Part shown: in pieces, positions 14,734-47,800 of the stretch | How positions within the stretch are numbered: position 1 is the stretch's first letter | Layout of the letters: every line of letters begins with the position of its first letter | From: Podarcis muralis | Taxonomy: Eukaryota | Direction of reading: 5' to 3' | Length of the DNA: 64,000 bases | Assembly (NCBI RefSeq): GCF_964188315.1 | Contig: NC_135656.1 | Location: 62,806,001 to 62,870,000 of the forward strand | The notes under the pieces: model-generated | What the model was told of the DNA's origin: nothing | The model's input: only the letters and a program-made list of their open reading frames with translations | Databases searched by the model: none | Made by a program: the position numbers and the translations under genes

Positions 14734-14885
14734 TCATAGAGTCATAGAATTGCAGAGTTGGAAGGGACCCTGAAGATCATCGGATCCAGCCCCCTGCAAT
14801 GCAGGAATATGCAGCTGTCCCATACGGGGATTGAACCTGTAACCTTGGCGTTATCAGCACCAAGCTCTAACCAACTGAGCTTTAC
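14734..14885 (-). mobile_element. SINE: tRNA-Ile-like head plus CR1-type 3' tail
   Basis: Minus strand AGCTCAGTTGGTTAGAGCTTGGTGCTGATAACGCCAAGGTTACAGGTTCAATCCCCGTATGG, then ATTCCTGCATTGCAGGGGG...GGGTCCCTTCCAACTC. Confidence 0.8.
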
Positions 14886-15861: not shown

Positions 15862-18800
15862 GTAAGATATTGCAGTACCATTCAATGGGTGCTCAAACAG
15901 GAAGATAACCTGGGATCTGACAGCTCTTGTATTCTGGTTTGAAACCATGCAGTATCAGACAGCAGGGTTTGGTGAGGACGAGGAAAAGCTGCCTAGTGAT
16001 TTATATAACATAATGCTCTCTGCACAATCAAGCACCCCTTATGAATCTGCAGCCAGTGGGAACCAACCTGATCTGGCCTGCATAGGGACCAGAGATTCCA
16101 TACCACAAAATTATGGGCAGAATGGCAGGTCCCAGTTTATATTCAGCTCCTCTCCCACAATGCCTTTGAAATTCTGTATCTAGATCAGGGTACGTATTTG
16201 AGCCTATATTATTGTGGGCATTGTCAGAGGACAAAGGGAGTGCTACTTTTAGCCATGTAAACTCGCTGCTTCTTATCAAGTGGTGAAAGGAATGGAGCGC
16301 ATTTTATGATCAGCCTGTCCCTGCGCTGTCCCCCTTCTTCCCAGGTATGTGAGCTGGCAGGCTGTTTCTCTGTCTCGCTAAGCTAGTTTCTGAACAGAAA
16401 TTTCACATTTTCCAGGATGATTATATCAGGATGATCTTGTAAATTTTGACCTGGATGCTGCTGGGCAAGCGCTTTAAACGATAAGACACCTCCACAGAGG
16501 CTGACCCTATCAGTGACTACTAGTTACGACGGCTATATCTGATGTCCAGTATCAGAGGCAGCATGCGTCTGAATGCCAGTCGCTGAAGGACATGAACAGG
16601 AGAGTGCTATGGAGGTTCACGGTCCGATTGTGGCATTCTCAAAGGCAGCAGACTGCCCACCACGAAAACAGAATGCTGGACTAGATGGGCCAGAGGAGCA
16701 TAAACCTAGGGGCCTAATACTGAGTTCGACCACTGGTCCATCTAGTTCAGTACTGTCTCCTCTGACTGGTAGCAGATCTCCAGAATTTCAGATGCGGTTG
16801 TGTGTGTGTGTGTTCCCAACCCGATCAGATGGGTGGGGTACAAATAATAAAATTATTTTATTCTACCTGGAGATGCCAGGGATTGAACCAGAGACCTTCT
16901 TCATGATACAGCAGGTGCCCTGACACGGAGCCATGGTCCTTTGTCCAATCCAGTAGGGTCCTTCTTACATCCTTAGGTTCTTGCCAGGAATGCTATAAAT
17001 ACCCATTTGTCTTATTGTGGAACTCAGAAGATCAACCTCACAGAATAGCTGCGATGATAAATGATACTGTGGTTGCAAAGGACCCAGTGCGAATCTCACC
17101 CCCATCTCCTCTGATGTCTGAATCCCTCCTAGGGCAGGAGAGGAACCCGGAGATATAGTGCTTCAGGTCAGGCAGATCCTCTGTAGCATGGAACTTTAAT
17201 CTCGAGCAGGGAAAGGGGGAGCTGCTGTCTAAAGCACGGGAGATGGATGTGACTCGTGCACCAATGTCATCAGTCCAAAGGACAAGGTTAGGCAAGATAG
17301 GATAGGTCCCATGTGACTTGTTTACTCCCAGGGCTACCTGCACAGGCAGATAGTGTGGCAGAGATGTGAGAGAAACCTCAGTGACATCTTATTATGAATA
17401 AGAAAGCCACATATAATCTGCCTTAAAAAAGGGAAGCACAATTGCCACTTTGTTGCTGGTCCATTTAAAGCAGTTTCTGCTCATACCTGCACCAATGCAC
17501 AAGACCAACTTGTGTGGGTCACAGAAAGATGGAGGGGAAGCATTACCTAAGTGCAAAAACAAGTGGTGTGGAAATATTAAATCACCATTCCTAGCTCAGC
17601 TGGTAGAGCACGAGACTCTTAATCTCAGAGTTGTGGGTTCAAGCCCCATAAGCAAAATATTCCAGCATTGCAGGGGGTTGGACTAGATGACCCTCGGGGT
17701 CCCTTCCAACTCCACAATTGTATGTTTCCATTTCTCTCCAGAACAGCAGCTGTGAGGCGGGATGGGGAGACTTTGGCTCTCCAGATGTTGCTGGACTACA
17801 TCTCCCATCAACCCCGGCCAGTATCAAGGCCAATGGAAGTTGCAGTCCATTAGCAACTGCAGGGCCAAAGTTGCCTCATGCCTGCTGTACAAGATGCCCA
17901 TTGGGGCACATGCCAAGCATACTTGCTAGGAGACAGGCTGCATTGGATTCCGGCAGAGCAAACACATTGGATGGTGCTGCAGAGGTACAATGTCGCCGTC
18001 ACTTTTATTATGGGAAGGAAAGAGAAGGGCTTCCAAACCTGTTGCTCCCAGTCACAAATACATCTAGCCTAAGTAGACTGTTCCTGTCCTGTTCCCGTTA
18101 CAGCAATCTACTGTGCTGACTGATGGGATTTGCAATCCACAGCATTTGATGGAGAAACGGCTCGCCAAATGCTTGCATATACCCCTGCCCTCTCAAGGCT
18201 ATCTTTAAAAGCCAAGGAAATGACAGTGCTTCTCCAAGCTTTTCATTCCCGTGGTATTTCAGCTGTTTACAACGGTTGAAATGTTTGTCCATCTTTTGTG
18301 GGTTTGCTGGCCAATGCTATTTTTACCCTTGTACCTTCTACCGCTGCTTAATAACTGGTCTCAGAAACTGGCTCCTCTTGTTCTGTGTCTTCGATTAGTA
18401 TTTTTTGTGCGACGTGCCTTTGGTTTGTTTAGAGCCAAAAGACGTACACAAGTGTTAATCCCCCTCCACAGTTAACATTCCCCTTCCTATCCCACGGCTG
18501 TAATCCAGGATTTGACTTGGAACAAAACTTCGAACAGGAACAAATCTGGGTTGGCCTGCAGTAAAGGGGACCTGTCTCTGTCATCCAGCAGCTGTCCCTG
18601 CAAACTGGAAAAGCAAAACAGCTTTAGCAGTGCTTGATCTGTGGCTTCTGACGCAAATAGATTTCCTCTCTCCTGCAGTGAACCAGAAGTTCAGAGCAAA
18701 TGATGAAGTGTACCGATCAGAGCCTAGTAACCATGTGTTTCTAGGTGACCATCAAGAGCTAAGTGGTGGGGGCAGTTCTTCAGTCACCAATTATAAACTG

Positions 18801-21800
18801 CTCTGTCATAGGACGTTGCTTTATATCGGTCCAGACCAGTATTGACTGGCAGCAGGAGTACCAGCTTGGGTGCCCAGAGCCATGGCTGTCATGCAGCGTG
18901 CATGGCCCTGGCACTGAAATTTGTGGGTGCCCTTCCCCTTCATGGGAAATTTTGTGGGTGCTCGGGCACCCAGGGAGTGGGCAGGTATGACTGGCAGCAC
19001 AGCTTTCGAGAGTTTCAGGCCAGGATTTTACCCAGCCCTACTCAGAGATGCCAGGAAGTGAGCCCAGGACCTGCAAAACAGGTGTTCTACCACTAAACTT
19101 TAGCTCTTCCCTTCCTCACCGCTGAGGATGGAGTATATTTTCAGCACCAGAAGGGTGTGCCCACCCTACTGTATTTATTTCAGCTTTCATTAGACACTTC
19201 CTCTAAATACATTCATAGGTTTGTCAACACCTCTGCTTGGAAGATGCTCCTGTGCCTTTTTGCCAGCTCTGAAGAAGAAGGGAGTTCAGCAGGGATGGCT
19301 TCTCTTATCACTACATCAGGAGCATCCAGACACACTGGGCATTTGCACCAGAGCCATGCACCCTGCCACCGTGCATTCACTGAGCTTGGGAAGGGGCAGA
19401 CACAGGCAGACTCTCCTCCATGCACAGGGGAAATCTGGGCCAGCCCTGATGTTCCCGAGTCCCTGCAGACAGAGGTGCTGTTGTCAGCCCTGCAATATTT
19501 TGTATTGTAAAGCTGGAAGTCACTGAAGAGCTCACTGCCACCCATTTAGACTGTGTGGGATTACTGGTTCTTGTACTACTCTAGAGGTAGGGAATCTTTG
19601 GCCACCTCAGGCTGCATTCTCTTCTGGGCAATTTGCCAGAGGCCACATGCCAGAGGAGAGCAGGGCAAGAGCCAAAAGTGGGAGGAGCAACAAATATAAT
19701 CTTTGCACAGTAGGCTGCGTTCTGCACATGCTCACACATCCCTCTCTAGCCAGGCAATCGAGAGTTGTTTTCAGAATTCTGGGGCACAGTTTAGCCAGGC
19801 AAGCAAGGCCAGTAGAGTCCCGAAGGCCTGGTAAAAAGACCTGCATGGAACATTTGGCCTGAGGTCCCCCTCCCCTGTTGTGGTCCGATCTCCTTCCATG
19901 GTATGGGCATCCAGGTACACTTGTGGAAATGTATATGAGCTGTCAAAGCAGCTCTTAGAAAAGCCCTGGTGCAGATCTGCATTCCAGAGTACCTTCTTTC
20001 ACCTCCTTATCCTTCTTCAGGTAGAGTCTCTCTTGTTTCCCTCCAGGTGGACTGCTACAACACGAAATCAGGAACAATCTACGACTATGGGGCTCTCACC
20101 ATAAACGGTGATGAGTACATCCCTTTCCAGCAGTACTCGGGGAGGATGGTCCTCTTTGTCAATGTGGCCACCTACTGAGGACTCACAATGCAGTATCTTG
20201 GTAAGATTCTCAGCTAGGAAGAGAAGCCTAGCTAGCAGCACGTGCCCTAGTAGTGGATACCTTTGATGGGAGGCACTAGACTTCCAGCAATGTCAGAAAC
20301 TGAGAAAACCTCTTAAGCCCAGAAGCATGAAGATTAGCTAACATTATTTGGTAGGGATCATCTCTGTTCTGTGATACTTTCCTCTTTATTATTGTGTCAC
20401 GTGCAGCTGATGAGATCTGGCCTAAGCACAGGTTCCGAGGCTCAGTCCAGGCATATCTACACTTAGGCAGATTTGCCTTTCCCTTGGGAGATTCAGGACA
20501 GATACATTACTCCTCCAGGCAGCGCATCGTTAATTTATGCAGCGATTGCCACCAACCTGGATGCTTTAAAAGAGGATCGGGCAAATTGATGGAGGAGGAG
20601 GCTATCAGTAGCTACTAGTCATGATGGCGGTGTTCTGTCTTGATGGTCAGCAGCGATACTGCCTTCTGAATACTAGCCGCCAGAAGCATCAGGAGGGGAG
20701 AGAGTTATTGTGCATTGGTCCTGCTTGCCCAGTTCTCACGGGCATCTGGTTGGCGACTGTGAGAACAGCATGGTGGACCAAATGGACCATTCTTGGAGGT
20801 TCATCTGCACAACGCAATGTTCAGAGATGCCAAGCTGCCTCTTGTTGACTTCAGGATGGCTCCATCACATAAGTATGCTTTGAGCCAAGTTTTTTGTTGA
20901 GCTAAGTCCTGCAGGTGACTTCTAGAGGGATAGCCGATTGTATTAATTCCTTTGGCACCTTAAATGGTAACCATTTTTTATTGTGGCATAAGCTGTCACC
21001 ATCAGAAGTGTGATCCTCAAATGGCAGGTATTTGGGGTACAGGTTGTAGCTGAAATTGCAGCGGAATGCAAGGACTGTGGCAATTCAATTAGAGTCTGAA
21101 TTGGGATTTTGCTCTGTTGGTGATTATGTTGCAGAACTGAATGCACTACAGAATGAGCTGCGAAATCATGGACTGGTTGTCCTAGGTTTCCCATGCAATC
21201 AATTTGGAAAACAAGAACCTGGCACGAATGCAGAAATCCTTCCAGGACTGAGGTGAGTACACCTACTGCATGACCTGATGGTTATGCCAGGTAACTCTAC
21301 ATTGCACAACAGGCTAATTTAGAAAGCCTCTTGTCCTTTAGTGCTTACAGTTGCTCACTATCTCCTTCTCCTGTGGCTCTACCATGTACCCCAGAGCAGA
21401 CTCACATGCATGTATTGCTAATTTTCACTTCTCTTCTCCTTCTGGCCAGAAGGTGGGGGCAGGCAACAGACTCTTTAATCTCTAGGGAACTTACCTACAC
21501 TTCCCTGGAAATAGTGATTGCCTGAGAGCAGGGAATGGAAAGGATATTTACGGTTGGGCAGCAGGGACTGTGCCTAATAGATTCTGAGCAGGGGCCAGGA
21601 GGCTGTCCTCTGAACAGTGTAGAAACTTTTCCTTGTTGCAGCCTCTCTGCGAAAGAGCTGGTTAAACTTGCTCCTTCTGTTCCAGATACGTCAGGCCTGG
21701 AGGAGGTTTTGTCCCAAATTTCCAGCTCTTTCAGAAAGGAGATGTGAATGGGGATAAAGAACAGAGAATCTACACCTTCTTGAAGGTTTGTATCGGCTCC

Positions 21801-22849
21801 TTTGAACCTCTACCACCTCTCATCCTGGCTCATGAAGATGTTAAGGGAAATAGCTTGGAGCCAAGGATTCCCCAAACAGAACTACGCTCCGATGATGCTC
21901 TCACTGAGAGACAGGGGGGCATTTCTAACCAATTTATTCCTTTCCCCTCGTGCCCCCACTAAATCTGCTCCAACGGTTGACCACTGTGAGAACAAGGATG
22001 CTGAATTGCCTTTGGCCTGATTCAGCAGGGTTCTTATAATCAGGACTGGGGTCTCCTATAAAAGAGCTTAAGAGATGGAGCAGGGGCCCATAAGGGGAAA
22101 TCAGAGAGAAGTGCCTTCTGCCAGTGTGGGTCTCCAATGGACACAGTTCCCTCCCATAAATAGATCATGGCAATCCCATTAATGGAAATGTAACTCGGGA
22201 TCCGAGAAAGTAAGTTCTCTTTAAGCAAATGCCAGGGGTGAGGCTGCCAAGAAAATTACAAGTTTTTAGATAGGCAAGCACCTATGTGGAACGTGGCAGA
22301 GGGGAAAAAAGCAGCTGGGGAGGGGGAGAAATTTTAAACAGAAAAGCAGCTGGTGAGGAGGGGTTAAGCACCTTCTTCCCTCCTGACTGGTATTCATTTA
22401 AGAACAAAACAGGTTGCAGCATCATTACCCACATGCAGATAGGGTAGTTTATTAGGCTCAAATGTTGCTGTCAGGAAGTACATTTCAGGCTCCTCTCTTC
22501 CTGTTCACAGCTGCCTACATCTCCCCTACACCACTAGAGCAATGACGAAAAGCTTGTTTTTATACTTCTCTCAAATTGCCTCCATTTCTAACAACAGAAA
22601 AGTAAATAATGCTTTTCTTTCTCTCTCTGGTAGAACTCCTGCCCGCCTCCTTTAGAAAGCTTTGGTGACCCCAAGAGACTTTTTTGGGAACCGCTGAAGG
22701 TCCACGATATCAAGTGGAACTTTGAGAAGTTTTTGGTTGGTCCGGACGGGAAGCCTGTGATGAGGTGGGCACACAGGACCAACATTGGCACTGTGAAGAG
22801 CGACATCCTGAAATACATGAGAGAGCAGCAGAACCTGTCAATGGGCTAG
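15775..22849 (+). CDS. GPX3: Glutathione peroxidase 3 (secreted selenoprotein), whole CDS span, 5 exons, 675 nt, 224 aa
   Basis: Spliced exons of 87+154+118+100+216 nt give a signal peptide, [23 protein letters not shown] and [15 protein letters not shown]. The catalytic tetrad U/Q/W/N is intact. Exon sizes and the position next to TNIP1 match mammalian GPX3. Confidence 0.97.
17585..17725 (+). mobile_element. SINE: tRNA-Lys(CTT)-like head plus CR1-type 3' tail (not a functional tRNA)
   Basis: CTAGCTCAGCTGGTAGAGCACGAGACTCTTAATCTCAGAGTTGTGGGTTCAAGCCCCA with a broken acceptor stem, then ATTCCAGCATTGCAGGGGGTTGGACTAGATGACC...GTCCCTTCCAACTC. Confidence 0.8.
20047..20200 (+). CDS. GPX3: GPX3 exon 2, contains the Sec codon TGA at 20176-20178
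   Basis: ctccag|GTGGAC...CTTG|gtaaga; [51 protein letters not shown]. The ORF track entry 19969-20178 stops exactly at this TGA. Confidence 0.97.
20510..20800 (+). mobile_element. CR1 LINE 3' fragment in GPX3 intron 2
   Basis: ctttaaaagagga..aaattgatggagga..ggctatca...ggcatctggttggc.actgtgagaacag; inverted homologues at 31255-31505 and 46620-46780. Confidence 0.65.
21135..21252 (+). CDS. GPX3: GPX3 exon 3
   Basis: ttgcag|AACTG...CTGAG|gtgagt; [39 protein letters not shown]. Confidence 0.97.
21686..21785 (+). CDS. GPX3: GPX3 exon 4
   Basis: ttccag|ATACG...TGAAG|gtttgt; [33 protein letters not shown]. Confidence 0.97.
22634..22849 (+). CDS. GPX3: GPX3 exon 5 coding part to TAG stop
   Basis: ctggtag|AACTCC; [71 protein letters not shown]. 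Confidence 0.97.
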
Positions 22850-23262
22850 AGGTCATGTAGATGTAGAGAAATAAGATGGGAGGGGTGGAGGTGGGGAGAC
22901 CTGTTGCTTTATCCAGAACCAGACATTTTATCCTCAAATCACAGAAAAAGGAACTGAACTTCCTTTGACCAAAAGCAAAAGGTTAAGATATAATGTTAAA
23001 TATGGACTAGTTTATTCAAAATCAGACTTCAACCCTTCCTCGACTGACCTGTTTTTCCAAACACACTTTGGAAGAGGAAGTGGGCCTCAGCTTTCCAGTC
23101 CCTCTCTAGGCTTCGCTCCCACCATGTTGTAAGTGGGATCTCTCCCTGCCATCACTCCAACTTTGAGCCCACCATAGCACATTGGTAGCATTGCAGGGAG
23201 GTTGACGAAGACGACCCTTGGGGTCCCTTCCAACTCTACAATTCTGTGATCAAAGCTGAGTA

Positions 23263-24228
23263 CAGTGGTACCTTGGTTCTCTTTTTTTAATAATAATTTT
23301 TATTGATTTTAACATATAAATTATAAAATTTACCACGAAACTTATCACTTATACCATCTTTTTTGACTTCCATCAGCACCTCTGATAATCCACCGTTTTG
23401 TTCACTTCTTATATATTTCTTAACTTTATATTGCCTTTAAGTCTCTTAACAAATTATCCTTTCCCTTATCTATTTTTGTAATACTTCCAATAATACTCCT
23501 CATAGAACTTCTTGCAAACCTACAAACGTCGTCTGGTCTTCACAAATACTTTTCAAATAGTCCGTAAATTTACTCCAGTCTTCCGGTACCTTGGTTCTTA
23601 AACCTTATCTGCTCCGGAAGTCCATTCCAAAGGCGCGCTTTCCCACAGAAAGTAATGCAAGATGGATTAATCCGTTCCAGACTTTTAAAAACAACCCCTA
23701 AAACAGTAATTTAATGTGCATTTTACTATCTAACGAGACCACTGATTCATAAAATGAAAGCAATAATCAATTACTGTACTATAAAATAAGTAAGACAGTA
23801 TTGTAGGTGATAAAAATTATTATTATTATTATGATTTTACCTGCACTGATGCTAGTCATTGTTTGGATGGGGGGCTTTTATCCATTTCCGTAGTCACACA
23901 ATCAATCAATCAATCAATCAATCAATAGCTGAAATAGCTGAACTGGGTTCCACACAGTCACAAACCAAATAAACCAAAAAAGCCTCAAAAACAAAAACGC
24001 AAAATAAATAGCAAAAACAAAGCGCCAAACTTAATCCATTCCAGAAGTCTGCTTGACTTCCGAAATGTTCGAAAAGAAAGGCTCTGCTTCTGATTGGTGC
24101 AGGTGCCCTGGAAACAATAGCTGACAGCCGCATCGGATGTTCGGCTTCCAAAAATTGTTCGAAAACCAGAACACTTCCGGGTTTTCGGCGTTTGAGAACC
24201 AAGGCATTTAAGAACCAAGGTATCACTG
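23263..24228. mobile_element. Tigger/pogo-like non-autonomous element in the GPX3 3' region, interrupted by L1
   Basis: TA|CAGTGGTACCTTGGTTCT ... AGAACCAAGGTATCACTG|TA; interior related to 48467-48681. Confidence 0.85.
23281..23584 (-). mobile_element. L1 3' end (304 bp) with a 14-bp TSD
   Basis: ORF2 end DWSKFTDYLKSICEDQTTFVGLQEVL*, AATAAA and A-tail on minus; TSD ggtaccttggttct at 23267-80 and 23585-98. Confidence 0.85.
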
Positions 24229-24865
24229 TATATTACAACACACAAAGTAGTCTTTTGGTTTTGATACTACATTCAAAGTATGAGAGGGACCTCTTTCCCC
24301 ACTCTTTGTTAACATATTTATATGCAAATATATATTCAGCAGTCTAGCCATCAGGCTTTATAAGTCAAGCCACACTCACTTCTATCTATAGAACTCAATT
24401 ATGCCAATTTATGGTGGCATAAGCTTTCACAGACTAGTGCTTCCACCAGGGCAGCCAACATGGTGCTCTCCAGCTCTTGTTGGGACTAAAACTTCCATTT
24501 GTCCTATCAGGCATGGCTAATGGTCAAGAATGATAGGAGTCATATCCCAACAAGATCTAGAAAACACCATATTGGTTGCCTCTGGTTCACATCACTATCA
24601 GGTCTCAGAGATCTTTATTTGCAACCCTGTGCTATAAGAACCCAACTCACACTGCTCCTGTTAGGGATGGGCAGATCTTTTGCTAATAAATGGGATCCAC
24701 ATTTTGGACAGCTCTGGATAAGGCACAGACCGCCTCCCTTCCACAGCAAGCTGAACAGACCCTCCCAGGCCAAGAGGTTATGTTGACTGAAGTTTCTCAA
24801 AGATGGCATTGCCTCCTCCGAGTGTGGATGACAGGAGAGAGGGATCTGGGGTCAAGATGATGCAT

Positions 24866-24919
24866 CAGTATGAAGGTTGGGTCTGAAAGCTCCCAAAGGG
24901 TGGACCTAGCCCAAGGCTG
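24866..24919 (+). promoter_or_regulatory. SECIS-like element (type II fold) of GPX3 with a non-canonical core
   Basis: ATGA at 24870; 10-bp helix II (GGTTGGGTCT 24875-84 with GGACCTAGCC 24902-11); unpaired AAA at 24886-88; GCTC/GGGT mini-stem; helix I CAG/CTG. The 3' core reads CAAG rather than NGAN. Confidence 0.75.
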
Positions 24920-25065
24920 CGAAGGGACAGTGGAGCAGCTCTTCTAGTGCATTCGTGCTGCCCCACAACTCACCTTTGCAGAGATGCAGTCCTTCTGATC
25001 AGCCCCACGATCCTAGCCTCTTTTGCTTCCACACCCACCCTGTGTATGAAAACCTGCCTAATAAT

Positions 25066-25071
25066 ATTAAA
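25066..25071 (+). terminator. Candidate GPX3 polyadenylation signal ATTAAA
   Basis: First AWTAAA hexamer downstream of the SECIS-like hairpin. Confidence 0.45.
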
Positions 25072-26067
25072 AAACAGCAAGCACTCAATGCAACTTGTGA
25101 GAGACTCTCCTTTAAGCAAGGGTGCAGATCTGGTGGCAATACAAGATGTGTGTTCCTTGGAGAATTTGGATCCTCTAGCTAGGTTACAGTCTCAACAAAA
25201 TGAGAGCTTGTCTATACTGCCACTAGCATTCTCACTAAGCCAAGACCCTCCACATCCATCCCAGGCAGCACTGACAGTGCTCAGGGATTATGGGAACTGT
25301 GGTTCAGCAGCATTTGGAGGGATACAGGTTAGGCACCCCAATTTATAGAGTGTCTTTAGAGGGTACGAAAGCCATTCACACAATGATCCTTTATGACAAC
25401 TCTAAGCTGAGTCGGTAATCTTCTTCTCATATATAGAGAGAGGCTTGCTTAAGGCAACCTAATGAGTTTGCTATTTAGGTGAAAACGGAACAGAAGGGGT
25501 TTCTGGTTAGAGCTCATCCTTTTTTGCTCTGTGTTATCATACTAAAAACTGCCCCTGTTAAAGAAAAGAAACCAGTTTTCCCACTGCAAAACTGTGTGAT
25601 AGCATTAGAATCTGATATCCTGAATCCATTCTGTATCCAGTTGCCCTGGTTCAGGCAGTTTCCCCTTGGTGTTCACTTCATGCAAATATAGATTCAAAGA
25701 GAAGATAAAATACACAAGCACACAACACACACACAACTTGGATCTTCTCTTTCACTTTTTGCACTGTGGATCAGGGGTAGCTAACCAGTGGCTGAACTAC
25801 AACTCCCATCATCCCTGATCCCATAGCCCATATTGGTTGGTGCTAATGGGTCCAACATCCAGAGGACTACTGGCTCCCCATCTATGCTGTGCAGTGAATT
25901 ATTTCTTACAGGTGATGAAGGGAAATATCCAAAGCCCTGACACTCATCCTCTTTTCATTTATGGCAATCCAAAAGGCATCTAATAAATAGCACCAGATAG
26001 CACAAAGACACATTTCACTTCGACATAACACTCCAGGGACTGTAGATCACATGGGGGGAAATCACAC

Positions 26068-26073
26068 TTTATT
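26068..26073 (-). terminator. Candidate TNIP1 polyadenylation signal AATAAA
   Basis: TTTATT on +; the first canonical minus-strand hexamer found downstream of the TNIP1 stop (implies a ~2.8 kb 3'UTR). Confidence 0.45.
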
Positions 26074-28861
26074 AGGAATAGAATAAAATTAATATATATA
26101 ATTAATATCATTTTGCCGAAACAAAATGTCTCTAACATTTATACAATAGGAGGAGCGGCAAGCAAAAATACTAGGTGTTACTATTTAGAGTGATGTGTAC
26201 AGTAAATTCTAATCAGGCTTTCCTTCACCTCTTTCTTTCCTATGACAGAAAGAAAAGGGGGGTTACAAGTGCCCCCGCCATAACATCTATGTTTGGGGTG
26301 GTATGCATTGATCTTGTAATGTAACATTTTGTAAATTGTTATTCTTTCCCTCTGTGAGGACAAGAAAAAAGGACCACCCTTTATGGTTACTTCCCAAGGA
26401 AAGAGTTTTCCCTGCAGAGTTTGATCGCTGACTATTTGTAAACATCCAATTCTAGTTTCAAATGAGCCCAGGCATTAACCATTTGAGCAGAGGCATACCT
26501 AAGTTCCCGGCACCTCTGAAGCCAGGAGATACCATGGACCAGAAACTCAAAGAGTTTGCCTTTCACGCTCCACTATTGACTTCCTTTGCGGCCATCAGGG
26601 TCGAGTCCGCTTTGCTCAGCCTCCCTACCACCACCTCCTCCACTGATCCCTCTGTTTGCCTACCTGCCTTTCTTCCACCCTCCACTCACTGCTTCCTCTT
26701 CTGCTTCCTTCCTTTTCGCTCCTCTTGCAACTCATGTCTTTCTTCCCTCCAAGCTCACAACGGGGACCTGCAGAGGTGCCCAGAGCAGTCTGTGCACCTC
26801 GTCCAGCCACCCAAAGCAGTGGAGTGGCAGCCCAGAGAGCGTGCCGATGGGCAGAGAGCCAGAGTGGAGGGGCACGATTTTGGTGCCACCCTGGGCTGGC
26901 ACCCTTGGCGAGAGCCAACCTGGCCAACCCCTGGTACACCCCTACATTGGAGTATTCCAGTTATTACAGCAGCATGTAACAAGCCATTTGTACCACCTCT
27001 TGCATAGCACACTTTGAAAGAAATGTTTATGACAATTAGGTTAGCTGGATTAGCATTTCAAAACAGTTTTTTTTAAAGCAATCTGTGGTTGAAACAAGTG
27101 TAGGTTTTACAGAAATGTCAAAATAAAGGGCACCTTTGTTTCCTTAGGGATTATCATGCTGAGGAACAGTGAACAGTGGAAACCTTACTGACCAAAGTCT
27201 TTGCACACTCTGACTCAGCCACTTTCTATATGCACTTATTTTCTTTTTCATCCTACCTATTCACCGTATGGTGCACCCTCATAATTAATTTGTCTCTTAA
27301 AAAGCAACAGCCATCCCTTCCCTGTATTTCATCTTTCATTCATGCACATTCTAAGGTCCCTCCCATCTTAATATGAAGCCTCTCCACTTCCACAAGCATG
27401 CTGCTGCTTTGTTGGAGAAACCAACCTCTGTGCGAGGAGGAGGGAGGAGATTGGGGAAGAAACCGTACATCGAGCCAGTGTGCAGAATGCCTATAGAAAG
27501 CGGAGCCCCAATTGCATCCAAGCTGTTTCATTATACCATCAATGCTCTTTTAAAAGTAACACAGCTGACCACAACACATGCAATCGGTGGTCACACAGCT
27601 GTGATTCCTTCCGACTCATGTAAAACAGTGGTAACATCAGAAGTACCACTTATAGCAGAGTTTTTAAACTTTGATTTTATGCAACACATATTCCTCAAAA
27701 GCCTTTGCTGGTCACTATTGCCCTGCACCAGGAGTGCAACTCTTCTTCGTTTTTTAAACTAAACTACCACATTTACAGCACAACCTTATTCTGGAGTGAA
27801 TCCCACTGGCCTCAAGTGGACTTACGCCAAGGAAAGTGGATTGCAGCCAAAGATTAGCTATTCTCGTTAACACATCCAGTCCATCAGGAATCATTTAAAA
27901 ACTGCCTTGCTAGATCAGACTGGAAGCAGCAAGCTGTCTTCAAGAGTTGAGAGAGAGAAGCTGTGCAGCAACACCTGCTAGCCTGTTTGCAGACCACATT
28001 TACATTGAGACTAATGGGTTCGATTTCATACTGTGGGATCCAAAAGGGACAGGGACAGAGTTTCAGGCTCAGGAAAACAATGCAGGAAGCTGCAGATGCT
28101 AAGAGGAGGGTAAATTAAGGTCTATGCATAAACTGAGTGTGTGGCGCAATACACAAACAAATACTAGTTTTAACCACGCTGAACAGCACAACTCAGTGGA
28201 AGCAGAATGTTTCCTTGGGCTAAACCACTGGATTTGACATGCAAATTAAAAAAAATATATTCAGCATGGGGAAAGTATATTTTACTTCCTATACACTATA
28301 CAGGGATTGGATTTCTCCTTCTCCCTACCCCCTTGCAAAAATTCAGTGTCTGTAACCTGTCCAGGCATTGACCACAACAGCTGCTCTGCAAAAGTCATTT
28401 TGCACATAGAATGTTTCCGCTGACACCAAATTCAGATGCTGTAAATGTAAAGCTGTCACATCACAGGGGGAATCAGCTAGATATAGGTTCTGTTGACACA
28501 GGGCTGCCAGTGTTTGCCACTGGAATCTGATAGCAGATCCATGGCTGTTGAATCCTTGAGGTCAGAAAGAGTTATTCATCCAAATGCTGAGTGTGAGTGA
28601 GAGGGAGACCCAGGTAGTTATTTCCAGTGGTTTTCCCCGTAACACTGGGCCACTGTCACTCCTTGGCAGTATCTTCCATACGTCTTCAGAAATTCCTGCT
28701 AAAGCTGCTGTTAGCTCAAGCATCCAAGTGTACATGTATTCCATGTACACAGATAAATGTGAATAGTGTCCGGGAGCACAAGGAGGCTTTTATCTGTACA
28801 TGCAGACTCACATGCGTATATCACAACTCCATTTCTTATGCTCTTGCACATGGCCATAGAG

Positions 28862-28905
28862 TTAGGCGGGCCTTTGGTTTTTAGGTAACCCAAGGCCTGT
28901 AGGGT
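28862..28905 (-). CDS. TNIP1: TNIP1 last coding exon to TAA
   Basis: Strong acceptor tttttgtctttcag; (D)PTGLGLPKNQRPA*; the PKN motif resembles the mammalian C-terminus. Confidence 0.8.
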
Positions 28906-31900
28906 CTGAAAGACAAAAACACACAAATATTACAAAAAGTGGCAGACAGGTCTTTGGTCAACAATATACTATTATGTTCAGCTCACAGAGATTTGAGCTG
29001 AACTGAATCCACCATCCCAATCCTCACCAACAGCAACTGCTGAGAACTCCATAGCCAAATGCCCGGTGGATATTTAAAATCTGGCCAATGACATTTAGTA
29101 TATTTCAGCCGCATCTGCACAACACACTAAACTGTGGTTTAGTACAGGGGCCACCAGTTTTTGGCGGGTCATCAGCACAGTTACAAAATGTTGAGGGCTA
29201 GGTGAAGGGAGAGCTAGGGAGGCCCAAAGACACACACCTCTGGCTCCTTGAAACACTGAGGCGCAAGTTTTCCATGAACTTGAAGACCAGTTAGATCTCT
29301 GTGAATCGCATGCATCAGAAACTCATGTGACCTTTCAGGCATGAAAAAGATTTGCACCTTCAAGCAAAGATTTGCACCTCCTTTCCTCCTATTTATTCAG
29401 GGCCCGTTTGTGTGTTAGGATAGGCAGGCGAAGGCAGCTTGAAACAGCGCCCTCACAGCACACAGGGTGTGGCTGCCGTAGAGTGAACCTCCCCAGTTTT
29501 GTGTGGCAAATTGGCATGTCACCACAAAGCCACCTATGTCAGGTGCTAGTGATGGCATTTCCATGCAATGGAAATGATCTACCATGTGGAGCAGCCAAAC
29601 GTTTCTGAACTGTTATCACAGCAGATAAGAAGACCCTTCGAGGAGAGGAGGAAAAGCAGCATTCACAATAGCTCTCGGGAATTTCACCAAAGAAGTTTGA
29701 ACCTCTTTCTTACCCGATTCCTTGGGGAGTTGTTTCCCACCATCTGGCGCTTGTGCGTTCTGATTTTGTGAAATAACACATGGTGGATACCAGGTATATT
29801 CAGGCTAAAGTGAGCAAGACATAAATAAACAAGCATAAACATGGCACACCGCTAATGCGTGCTTCAAAATGGAAACTTTGCTTCTCCAAACTGAATGGCC
29901 CCACTGGCAATAGGCTAAGCAGAACCGTTCATTCTGGGGTGAACATGCCCTGGATTCCTTCAAGAGGAAGAACTTAATATGAATTCTATAACTAAAGAAA
30001 GAATCAGGCCATGCAACAAAATTTTGAGCACAGATTCTGGTAGGCAAAGCCAACAATTTCAGATTTTGGAAAACGGGAGAAGTAGAGCTGCTCGTTCTGG
30101 GCATTCGCTTACACCTGGAGTTTTGCACAGAATCTGGCACAATCCTGAGACTCTGATCTTCATTTATTTTTTAACGAGGCAATGGATGGCTTTATACTTA
30201 TAGCCTCCAGTTCCCAGCTGCCTTTTTTCACAGCCCTGATGCCTTCTGATTTAGTTAACTCACAGGAGGGAATCGATGGTAGTTCTGAACCGGAGGACGC
30301 TCATTTGGCATTGCCGCTGGTGGGTAACGGATCTGCTGCCACTCCTCATAACCATGATACATGTGGGGCTGGACTGGAGTGGGGCACTGGAACTGGTACA
30401 TGGGGCAGACTGGGGCCACCGGTCCTGGCTGCGGCTCTGGATGAAGCCTGTCACCAGAATGCTGTAAGTGAGAAAGCAGGAGGCTGAGAATGATGCAAAC
30501 ACAGATAAGCCATACACAAGGCTAATGATTTACTACTGGAATATTTGGGCACCAATAGGAGGGAGGTTATCCTGTACTTTTCATCCAGGGACATTTCATC
30601 CTGGGCTGACTGAAGGAACACTATGCCCCCTTCACTGTATTTTGATCTCACTGTTGCCAGGAGGAAAAAGTAAGCGTAGGCTGAGAAAAAGGAGTTACCT
30701 TTTAAATAAAAGCAGTGGATAGTAAGAGAAAAATGACTCAGATCTAATCTGGACCTACATGTAGAAGCAATTTTGATCTCCCTGGATAGGTAAACAGAAA
30801 GCCATCTACAGACAACTCTGACACTGTCAATTTAATGGGATATCATGCCCTATAGTCTGTGGGGCAGAACCAGTCCTTACCAGCTGGGGTGGATTAAANN
30901 NNNNNNNNNNNNNNNNNNNNNNNNNNNNNNNNNNNNNNNNNNNNNNNNNNNNNNNNNNNNNNNNNNNNNNNNNNNNNNNNNNNNNNNNNNNNNNNNNNNN
31001 NNNNNNNNNNNNNNNNNNNNNNNNNNNNNNNNNNNNNNNNNNNNNNNNNNNNNNNNNNNNNNNNNTTATCAGCCACAATGGCATTGGTAATTGGTTGCTT
31101 TCCCTGAAAGAAAAACAATTATGTAAAAAAATAGGTAATATCCAGTTTGGGGCTAGAAGTTTCACACCTTTCGCCCAATTAGGGTTCAATTTGACTGGAA
31201 AACATCCACAATGTATGGAAATAATTTATGGGTGCGTCATGGCAAAGAGAATATCATAAGAAGAGGCCACTTGGCCATCTGGTCCAGCATCCTGCTCTCA
31301 CAGTGGCCAACCCGATGCTTGTTGGAAACCCGTAAGCAGGACCCCAACACAAGAGCGGTCTCCCCTCTGGCAGTTCCCAGAAACTGGAAACATTACTGCT
31401 TCCAACCATGAAAGCAGAGCATAGCCATCGTGGCTAGTAGCCACTGAAAGCTTAATTCTCCATGAATTTGTCTAATCCTCTTTTTAGGTCATCCAAGTTG
31501 GTTATTCAGATTAACTTGGGACAGAATGGACTTGTGGGTGAACACATGCAAAAGTGACCCGATTCATTCATTGATCCCTAGTACAAACTGGCCCTAAGGA
31601 AGCTACCAAAAAATTATACAAGTGATTGGAATCTGAGCCACATGTCAAAGTTGGGTGAAGAATTTATTATTTATACCCCGCCCATCTGGCTGAGTTTCCC
31701 CAGCCACTCTGGGCAGCTCCCAATCAAGTGTTAAAAACAATTCAGCATTAAATATTAAAAACTTCCCTAAACAGGGCTGCCTTCATATGTCTTTTAAAAA
31801 TAGGATAGCTGCTTATTTCCTTGACATCTGATGGGAGGGTGTTCCACAGGGCGGGCACAACTACTGACAGGCCCTCTGTCTGGTTCCCTGTAACCTCACT

Positions 31901-44800: not shown

Positions 44801-47800
44801 CTGCAAAAGATACGGAGGCGCAGAAACATTGTAATCTGGGAGGAGGGCAAATAAGGGCTACGTTTAGGCAGGCTCAGAAAAGCAGCTTGCCATCTTTTCC
44901 TTCCTTCATCCGAGGCCTAGAGTTGGCAACACTTTTGTCTCCGGATGAGTTACTCTGGACTTATTTCAAGAAATACCAGCTACAAAGTAAGCAGGCTGAA
45001 TAGAGTCCCCGTGTTGGGGTTGGCACGGTTTGCTTCTCCTGGATAAGGTATTTTCCCTCTGAAAATCTCACCCTGAAGCTGCCCCTATGCTTCAATGGCA
45101 GAGTGGGGGGTGGACAAGATGGCATGGGAGGGAAGAGGAGACTTCCCCTCCTCACAGTCCCACTCAACTGCCCAGGCAACCTTGTGGTGTTTTTTTCTAA
45201 AACAAAAAACGTAGAAAGCTGCCTTATACCAAGTCAGCCCCCTGGCTGTGTCTCTCCATGACTTCAGGCAGGAGTCTCTGTCAACCCTACTTGGGAGATG
45301 CCAGGAATGAACCTGGGACTTTTTGCATGGAAGCCAAATGCTTTGCCACTGAGCCACAGCCCTTCCCCAAACACTTCAGCTTCTCCAATCCCTTGGTCCT
45401 TTGGGTTGCCGTTGTCTGCAGATCTTCCACTTACAAAATAATAATAAATTCCTCTCTCTTTTTTTAAGGTGGGTTGACCAGGAGTGTGAACAGTACAAAA
45501 CTGCTCTCATTTCATGGTCTAAGTGTTCAACAGCACTCTAAGCATAATTCAATGCCCAACTCCGATTCCTCAAAGGGAACATAAGTTGGGCTAAAACACC
45601 AAGGTCAGTATTTAGTCCTTGAGGCCCAGCATGAGAGATGATTCTAGAGAGATCCAGTGTCTTTCAGGCACTTGCCCTTGTCTGTGGTATTCTGCACTTC
45701 CAGAAGAACTCATTGCATTACCCATGCCCCTTTCACCTTTGCCCTGTCTCTATTATTGCTGAAAATTCCACCTGAAGGCACCTTAGCTGTAAGCAGCAAA
45801 TGGAGCCCGCCCTCCTATTAAGGCGAAGTAAGATTACCGCCTCAGGCGGCAGATGCTAAGAACAGAAGTGGATGACCCCCCTGGCTGTTCTTCTCTTTGA
45901 AGGACAGAGCTGTGTGCTCACTTAATAGTTTAGTGCCTGCTACCCTTAGGCGCAGAGTAGGACATCCCCTCATTGCTGGCACTGAAGAAAAATTCAACTG
46001 CTAGTCCAGTTGTGTATGTGCCATTATCCCTTCACCTCAGACTGCTAAATATTTTAAGGTGACCTTGCCAGTAAAAAAAAAAAAAAAAAGGATTGCCAGA
46101 ACTAGTTTGCTTCCAAGCTTCTAATGCCACCTAAAAGTAGTACCTAAAAATAACCCCCTCTCAGTTTTTTCCCCAGTTGCAACTAATTTAACTTCTAAAG
46201 GACTTTAAACCAATTTGGACCAAGTTCCTGACAGCCGTTTTGGGAGCGCTGAAAAATTCCTTTGACACTTCAACACAGAAAACAGCCAGCATGTAATGTA
46301 GGAGAACTCCAGGGGTGCTTGAACTCTGCAGCAGAAGTCTACAGACTTGGGTCCCCCCCCCTCCCCGCCCTACCACGCACTTTAAGGACAGGAGACTCTG
46401 GCATATCTTCTGAGCTTGATTTGTGGCTGGGCTCCCCAGCACTCAGTTTCAGAGCTCATTTTTCATACTAAATATACGAAGGACGAATGAATGAATGATA
46501 AATAAAGTGTCTCTGATGATGTACTTGGTGTCTTTCCTTCACCACTGAGCAAGGCAGCATGTCTTTGGTCTGTATACTTGGAATTATGGCATGTGGCATC
46601 CTGGGAAGACAGTGCGGTAGCTTACATAAGAAGAGGCTGAATCAAGCCAATGGCCCATCTAGTCCAGCGTCCTGTTCTCACAGTAGCCAACCAGATGCCC
46701 GTGGGAAGCCTGAGCAAAAGAGTACTCTCCCCTCTTAAGGATTCCAGCAACTGGCATTCAGAAATGTTCTGTCTCCCACAAGGAGACTGGAAACAGAGAC
46801 ACTCCTAGGAACCAACTCATCAGACCTGCCTTATACCAAGTCAAATCATTGGTCCCTTTACTTGAGCATTGCCCTCACAGACCGACTGAGGATTTCAGGC
46901 AGGGTTCTCTTCCAGTCCTACCCAGAGATGCCAGGGGTTGAACCTTCTGCATGCAAAGCAGGTGCTTTGGCCCTTCCACAAGCGCAGGCAAAAACTTGAC
47001 AAGCAATGAATAACAACAAAAAGCTGAGCACAACTCTTTACTCTCTAGCAAGTACCTCTGAATAAGGATTCTATTCATTCCATTCTCTGTAATTTCCACA
47101 CTGCTAATGAAGAAAAATAGGGATGCGGGTGGCACCACAGAGCCTAGCACTTGCTGATCAGAAGGTTGGCGGTTCAAATCCCCGCGACGGGGTGAGCTCC
47201 CGTTGCTCAGTCTCTGCTCCTGCCAACCTAGCAGTTCGAAAGCACGTCAAAATGTGCAAGTAGATAAATAAGTACTGCTCCAGCGGGAAGGTAAATGGCG
47301 TTTCCGTGCGCTGCTCTGGTTCGCCAGAAGCAGCTTAGTCATGCTGGCCATATGACCCGGAAGCTGTATGCCGGCTCCCTCGGCCAATAAAGCGAGATGA
47401 GCGCCGCAATCCCAGAGTTGGCTACGACTGGACCTAATGGTCAGGGATCCCTTTACCTTTAATGAAGAAAAACACTCCTGCAACTTGGACCACCACTTCC
47501 ACCTTAACTTCGCTCCCCCTTTCCCCACCTCTCTCACTCCTACCTCTTGCTGTTCAGTTCCAATTGGTTTCGATTCCAAAGTGCTGGCGGCACATGTGTC
47601 CCTCTGTCAGAAGCTCTACAACTGAAATGCACCCGCTTTATACGAGGCCCTGGGTTTATGGCACACCTTCCCTTGACAGGCAGCCGCAGAGCCACACCCT
47701 CCTCCCTGACGTGGTTGAGCTGGGCATAGTGAAGCACTAACCTGGTCTGGGTTGTTATGGCTGATTAGTTACTCGGTTGCCTCGGAGACGAAAGCCACCA

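Follow-up and report, generated by a model that had tools for sequence, protein, structure and literature searches.

An AA-core variant of the GPX3 SECIS element, found in turtles and most sampled squamates, is retained and probably functional

The 64,000-nucleotide stretch of the Podarcis muralis genome analysed here (the window) carries a GPX3 gene followed by a hairpin at 24866-24919 on the forward strand, which is orthologous to the GPX3 SECIS element of other vertebrates and has the architecture of a form 2 SECIS (helix I, core, helix II, AAA and mini-stem). Its 3' core, at 24912-24915, reads CAAG and not the NGAN that makes up the tandem sheared G.A/A.G pairs of SECIS elements. The occurrence of the same AA core in distant reptiles points to an old, widespread and retained variant, not to a defect of one lizard. 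From the sequence comparisons presented below, we consider that this orthologue most likely (probability of about 0.8) still directs selenocysteine (Sec) insertion at the UGA at 20176-20178. The AA-core hairpin is thus probably a retained, functional SECIS variant, which departs from the SECIS definition in one defining feature and otherwise most likely works like a SECIS.

The best named protein matches of the locus are GPX3, and the exon 5 protein differs by 1 residue from Podarcis lilfordi GPX3. The in-frame TGA of the original prediction is present in exon 2, as the selenocysteine codon at 20176-20178 (forward strand; context FVNVATY-TGA-GLT), and TGA is kept at the Sec position in 11 of the 11 GPX3 orthologues checked, with no Cys codon substituted. 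In Crotalus adamanteus (L024 6001-14460) and Podarcis lilfordi (L023 6001-17385), the annotated GPX3 skips the Sec-codon residues; these models, spliced around the TGA, are selenoprotein mis-annotations. The last coding exon (22634-22849, forward strand) consists of 71 codons (22634-22846) and the stop codon, and the 3'UTR extends from 22850 to 25090 on the same strand according to RNA contigs and reads, its 3' end being approximate. The hairpin sits inside this 3'UTR of a UGA-containing gene, and ~150 nt 3' of it lies the poly(A) signal region (AATAAT then ATTAAA, 25060-25071, forward strand), which is aligned in all species and corresponds to AATAAA in the others. TNIP1 is found downstream of GPX3 on the opposite strand (tail-to-tail) in P. 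lilfordi, Crotalus and Alligator.

The SECIS lies 2.0 kb from the stop codon in the window vs 0.2-1.1 kb in other reptiles, because repeat-derived insertions inside the 3'UTR (~23216-24230, with contig depth in the hundreds or thousands) push it away. In P. lilfordi, whose 3'UTR is 94-96% identical to that of the window, the hairpin is ~470 nt nearer to the stop codon. Many reads at 23216-24230 run off into unrelated sequence, and ~300 nt (23282-23584) are without counterpart in P. lilfordi. Outside the gene, Rfam gives three tRNA-like matches (14824-14881, 17592-17649 and 45293-45363; 36-41 bits), two of them without acceptor stem, which are probably copies of tRNA-derived SINEs.

The non-canonical core and its register, as originally predicted, were confirmed by sequence, fold and Rfam, and the minimum-free-energy fold, computed on 24855-24925, agrees with the predicted shape: 12 nt to the AAA, a 10-bp helix II, a mini-stem and a short helix I. 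The 5' core is AUGA (24870-24873, forward strand), in keeping with the (A/G)UGA of SECIS elements; softshell turtle and alligator have GUGA. In k-turn numbering G24872 is 1b and A24873 is 2b. Helix II pairs its 5' strand (24875-24884) with its 3' strand (24902-24911), both on the forward strand, over a length that falls within the 9-12 bp of SECIS elements, and is followed by GAAAG, whose unpaired AAA (the AAR motif; 24886-24888, forward strand) comes 12 nt (24874-24885) after the ATGA. The mini-stem (24889-24892 with 24898-24901) and helix I (24866-24869 with 24916-24919) are both of 4 bp; helix I is short and poorly conserved, and the exact loop geometry is uncertain. On the 3' side the core is formed by C24912, A24913, A24914 and G24915 (forward strand), with A24913 (2n) in place of the usual G and A24914 at 1n. 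Note that a hairpin fold alone is no proof of an element; the single-sequence fold energy has a z-score of -0.54, i.e. no better than shuffles, and energy was left out as evidence. The hairpin is more than chance because it is orthologous across amniotes.

At gathering thresholds, Rfam reports no SECIS match in the window. A permissive scan with the Rfam SECIS_1 model gave a sole match within 20000-30000, at 24859-24920 (E=1.2), with 22.7 bits vs a gathering score of 35 bits; its alignment covers AUGA, helix II and AAA and deletes the consensus 3' UGAU. This sub-threshold score says little, because canonical GPX3 orthologues are likewise under the threshold (21.9-34.1 bits). In a pattern scan of the forward strand over 22850-30000, 10 of 10 helix II pairs were found only at the 24866-24919 hairpin, and the prediction of a single SECIS-like hairpin behind GPX3 therefore held in both the Rfam and the pattern scan. 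One candidate with the canonical pattern emerged from the latter, at 25097-25172, and was rejected: it has 8 of 10 pairs, lies past the poly(A) signal, has no Rfam match and carries AA for GA in P. lilfordi. Two alternative registers checked by eye, one from the upstream ATGA at 24857 and one with the downstream GA at 24921, provide no helix or right spacing, and the latter GA is absent in turtles.

A second conserved stem-loop was observed just 3' of the SECIS, at 24929-24967 (forward strand), with a loop of 17 nt that includes an invariant GTGCATTC at 24948-24955 and with counterparts at L024 15578-15614, L025 9163-9201, L026 8897-8935 and L030 1405-1440. It is found from rodent to lizards; 81% of the cells of its stem (up to 11 bp) pair, vs 24-56% when slid, and 7 of the 11 pairs have changed on both sides, with many compensatory changes. 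Rfam has no match to this stem-loop. RNAalifold gave a different, weak 4-bp stem for it, and the 11-bp stem was tested separately. Between this stem-loop and the poly(A) signal lies an amniote-conserved block, TGCAGRGATG (24976-24986).

To compare the element between species, GPX3 loci and mRNA contigs were collected by protein searches followed by contig retrieval. An exon-2 protein query returned almost only birds and an exon-5 query few reptiles; a stop-free stretch of the softshell-like mRNA used as query led to full-length named proteins. The gecko-like, Pelodiscus-like and Anolis-like labels used here come from protein similarity, and the outgroup is one rodent-like mRNA contig. Two squamate mRNA contigs (L028 and L029) stop before the SECIS and contribute no core. 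In the GPX3 of three of these sources, softshell-like (L002 263-739), alligator (L026) and gecko-like (L027), the conserved motif FPCNQFG reads FPSNQFG, a Cys-to-Ser change.

Each GPX3 locus or mRNA displays one SECIS_1-like match behind GPX3 (by pattern match for the rodent-like mRNA), and the resulting alignment of 10 amniotes runs without a gap from helix II to the end of the 3' core, where the core column differs only as G or A. The window hairpin is orthologous column by column to the mammal, bird and alligator GPX3 SECIS, its core aligning gap-free with those of rodent, bird and alligator. The only block of the 3'UTR that is strongly conserved with distant species, 24746-25115, corresponds to the hairpin and what follows (blastn E from 1e-5 to 1e-43 vs gecko, snake, turtles, alligator and the iguanian-like lizard). 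Over helix II and the mini-stem, 91.4% of the cells of the 10-amniote alignment pair, vs 24-61% with the partner columns slid, and 0 of 500 shuffles reached this value. Helix II alone reaches 94% and includes three pairs with changes on both sides; a compensatory change is also present within the AA-core group (column pair 24:57, U:A in the lacertid vs C:G in the softshell). The GAA of the apical motif is invariant. Overall, these data identify the 24866-24919 hairpin as the GPX3 SECIS by orthology.

We compared the window over 22860-25500 with sequences from three other studies of the species, contigs X3 and X13, probably of RNA origin as judged from their small total size, and raw RNA reads X23. 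The X3 and X13 contigs span 24180-25361 or further and show no difference at 24913. The X23 reads over 24818-24995, at a depth of ~4-5 that drops from ~5 to <0.5 past 24995, display no letter but A at this position. X23 differs from the window at 7 sites in 24729-24860 and at 0 in 24861-24995, a pattern that, at this low depth, fits constraint on the hairpin; the X23 animal, which carries the same species label, seems to come from a diverged lineage. One of the 7 differences, A>C at 24860, would replace an A.G mismatch by C:G in the helix I proposed by Rfam. The hairpin of P. lilfordi is identical, A included, and the spliced mRNA contigs L002 (softshell-like) and L027 (gecko-like) read A at the variable core position; neither these contigs nor the RNA reads give any indication of A-to-I editing. 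The A24913 state is fixed in the species.

Core states in the sampled amniotes fall into few types. CAAG is present in the window, P. lilfordi, Lepidochelys olivacea and the Pelodiscus-like mRNA (100% protein identity over 81 residues), and TAAG in Crotalus adamanteus and the gecko-like mRNA (86% to Sphaerodactylus). UGAG is found in the Anolis-like contig (87.5%), Alligator and the rodent-like mRNA, and two bird species have CGAU and UGAU. Within the core only the partner of the last A of AUGA, usually a G, is variable; the A that partners the G of AUGA (A24914, 1n) is invariant in 10 of 10 aligned sequences. On the accepted amniote tree, which is established knowledge, the G and A states require three or more changes, including one or more A->G returns in the iguanian-like lineage, and both most-parsimonious scenarios make A ancestral for the sampled squamates and for the two sampled turtle lineages. 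In the Anolis-like lizard and in archosaurs the core either reverted to G or had remained G. Being common to lacertids, the gecko-like lineage, the rattlesnake and two turtles, a thin sampling of five lineages with three taxon labels inferred from protein similarity, the AA core dates back approximately to the deepest splits in these groups. We regard as probable, at somewhat lower confidence than continued Sec insertion, a class of SECIS elements in which G.A plus A.A stand in for the GA/AG tandem, kept approximately since the deepest squamate and cryptodiran splits, with G and A interchanging across sauropsids.

This history bears on two proposals of the original prediction. It had derived CAAG from an ancestral CGAG by CpG decay; for the lizard this route is unneeded and probably wrong, since the nearest squamate states, TAAG and TGAG, indicate that the G->A change predates lacertids and that the adjoining base was then a T and not a C. 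For the turtle AA core a CpG route is possible, one bird having CGAU. It had also held that the same CAAG in distant reptiles with normal read-through would denote a functional variant and not decay. The part of this concerning spread is borne out, with CAAG in the turtles and TAAG, not CAAG, in the gecko-like mRNA and the rattlesnake.

GPX3 appears to depend on recoding in AA-core species. Between the gecko-like and softshell-like sequences, both with an AA core, the codons beyond the UGA give dN 0.159 and dS 1.93, the latter near saturation, i.e. a dN/dS of 0.083, and across comparisons post-UGA dN/dS is ~0.08-0.19. The post-UGA coding region is under strong purifying selection; a frame never read past codon 72 would not be so conserved. 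No canonical SECIS that might serve as an alternative was found in the 3'UTRs of AA-core species, and in three AA-core genomes Rfam gives one SECIS-like match per locus.

The reptile sampled in a 2012 vertebrate survey of SECIS elements was reportedly Anolis, and such a survey would miss the AA state because the Anolis-like sequence has the canonical core. The survey itself reports the GA/GA quartet in "almost all" examined SECIS and names no exception to the quartet. Reviews present the GA/GA pairs of the SECIS core as invariant and the 3' GA as essential, and the core definition of SECISearch3 is UGAN/KGAW, any candidate with "no GA-AG in the core" being discarded. Our literature search, with most subscription papers outside its coverage, found no report of an AA-core SECIS; the SECISearch3 filter may explain this lack of reports. 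The window hairpin resembles the canonical form 2 SECIS (RF00031) in its 5' AUGA, 10-bp helix II, AAA at 12 nt from the core and mini-stem, and differs from it in having A.A as the second sheared pair and AA in the 3' core where canonical elements have A.G and GA. Other natural departures that are functional or retained, the GGGA-type core of Toxoplasma, which alters the first bases of the 5' core, and the apical-loop CC that mammalian SelM and SelO have for AA, leave the 3' GA of the sheared tandem untouched, unlike the window hairpin.

A closer parallel is found among k-turns, in which G(1b) and A(2b) lie on the bulged strand and G(2n) and A(1n) on the opposite one (PMC3985660). By sequence, the AA core has the arrangement of such a motif, with G24872 and A24914 invariant (1b.1n) and A24913 at 2n. 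Adenine at 2n is "extremely rare" among natural k-turns, and one k-turn of this kind is bound by L7Ae protein in the standard way (PMC3985660). This k-turn, Kt-23 of Thelohania solenopsae, shares its A at 2n with the window hairpin and retains both its fold and the binding of an L7Ae-family protein (PMC3985660). An engineered G2nA k-turn also folds normally, its A.A pair being isosteric with the usual pair (Huang and Lilley, PMC3985660). The two systems differ in several respects: Kt-23 is an rRNA k-turn with a 3-nt bulge, crystallized with a non-cognate archaeal L7Ae and not with SBP2, whereas the window hairpin, a recoding signal in an mRNA, contains an internal loop and has SBP2 and L30 as candidate partners. 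In SECIS elements generally, an internal loop takes the place of the simple bulge of k-turns, and SBP2 binds these elements via an L7Ae-type domain.

We propose that the AA core corresponds to G2nA. The G24872.A24914 pair (1b.1n) would be kept and the A24873.G pair (2b.2n) would become A24873.A24913, an A.A pair near enough to A.G in shape for the core still to kink and for the L7Ae-type domain of SBP2 still to bind the kinked AA core. The efficiency of Sec insertion may be altered by the change, and a working core, perhaps a somewhat weaker one, is plausible by analogy. The human GPX3 SECIS is "very weak" in reporters, and no selenoprotein is more abundant than GPX3 in human blood; the weak reporter activity of the human element may explain why the change is tolerated at GPX3.

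This proposal overlaps with the main alternative, a working but weakened SECIS giving a lower or more selenium-sensitive GPX3 output where recoding demand is low, and differs from it only by the size of the effect. We hold this reading as tentative. In standard complexes the G at 2n is contacted by an asparagine of L7Ae, a contact lost or disordered with A; the canonical human element is itself "very weak" in reporter assays; and at least three G/A switches on the accepted tree are what a nearly neutral site would show. However, five lineages have retained the A, and conservation is otherwise strong in the core and in helix II. We see little room for a dead or decaying hairpin in a lizard GPX3 that is losing Sec decoding, as the original prediction had suggested. 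Such a reading can draw on the description of the 3' GA as essential and on the Rfam alignment that deletes the 3' core, but the same state recurs in gecko, snake and turtles (CAAG in two turtles, TAAG in the gecko-like mRNA and the rattlesnake), the TGA and the downstream frame are intact everywhere (dN/dS ~0.08-0.19) with no swap to a Cys codon, and no part of the 3'UTR is better conserved than the hairpin.

Sec insertion driven otherwise, by a canonical SECIS elsewhere in the mRNA or by A-to-I editing at 24913, is also improbable. The canonical-pattern hairpin at 25097-25172 and the conserved second stem-loop adjoining the SECIS might be invoked in its favour, but the former is disqualified by its 8/10 pairs, its place past the poly(A) signal, its lack of an Rfam match and its AA in P. 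lilfordi. The latter is without SECIS features and is present in GA-core species too, and transcript sequences, both contigs and reads, carry A and not G. An artefact of assembly or an allele confined to the sequenced individual, i.e. the consensus error or segregating allele of the original prediction, is refuted: the G that the reads might have revealed at 24913 was looked for in X3, X13 and X23 and found to be A throughout, and A occupies the aligned column in another Podarcis (P. lilfordi) and in four distant reptiles. Of the four options put forward in that prediction, the evidence favours the tolerated new core variant, which we develop here as a retained SECIS that most likely still directs Sec insertion.

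The sheared G.A pairs of the SECIS core are deemed invariant and needed for SBP2 and L30 binding, a textbook rule that may have an exception. If the variant is functional, SBP2-dependent recoding would proceed without a strict need for the 3' guanine, and standard SECIS filters would miss real elements; in particular, reptile GPX3 genes may be listed as being without a SECIS as a result of the GA-AG filter of SECISearch3. A natural exception retained in turtles and most sampled squamates would reveal which of the two sheared pairs is truly indispensable, and AA and GA cores in near-identical hairpins offer natural matched pairs for work on binding, structure and read-through. The AA core also raises the possibility that GPX3 output or selenium sensitivity may differ among reptile lineages.
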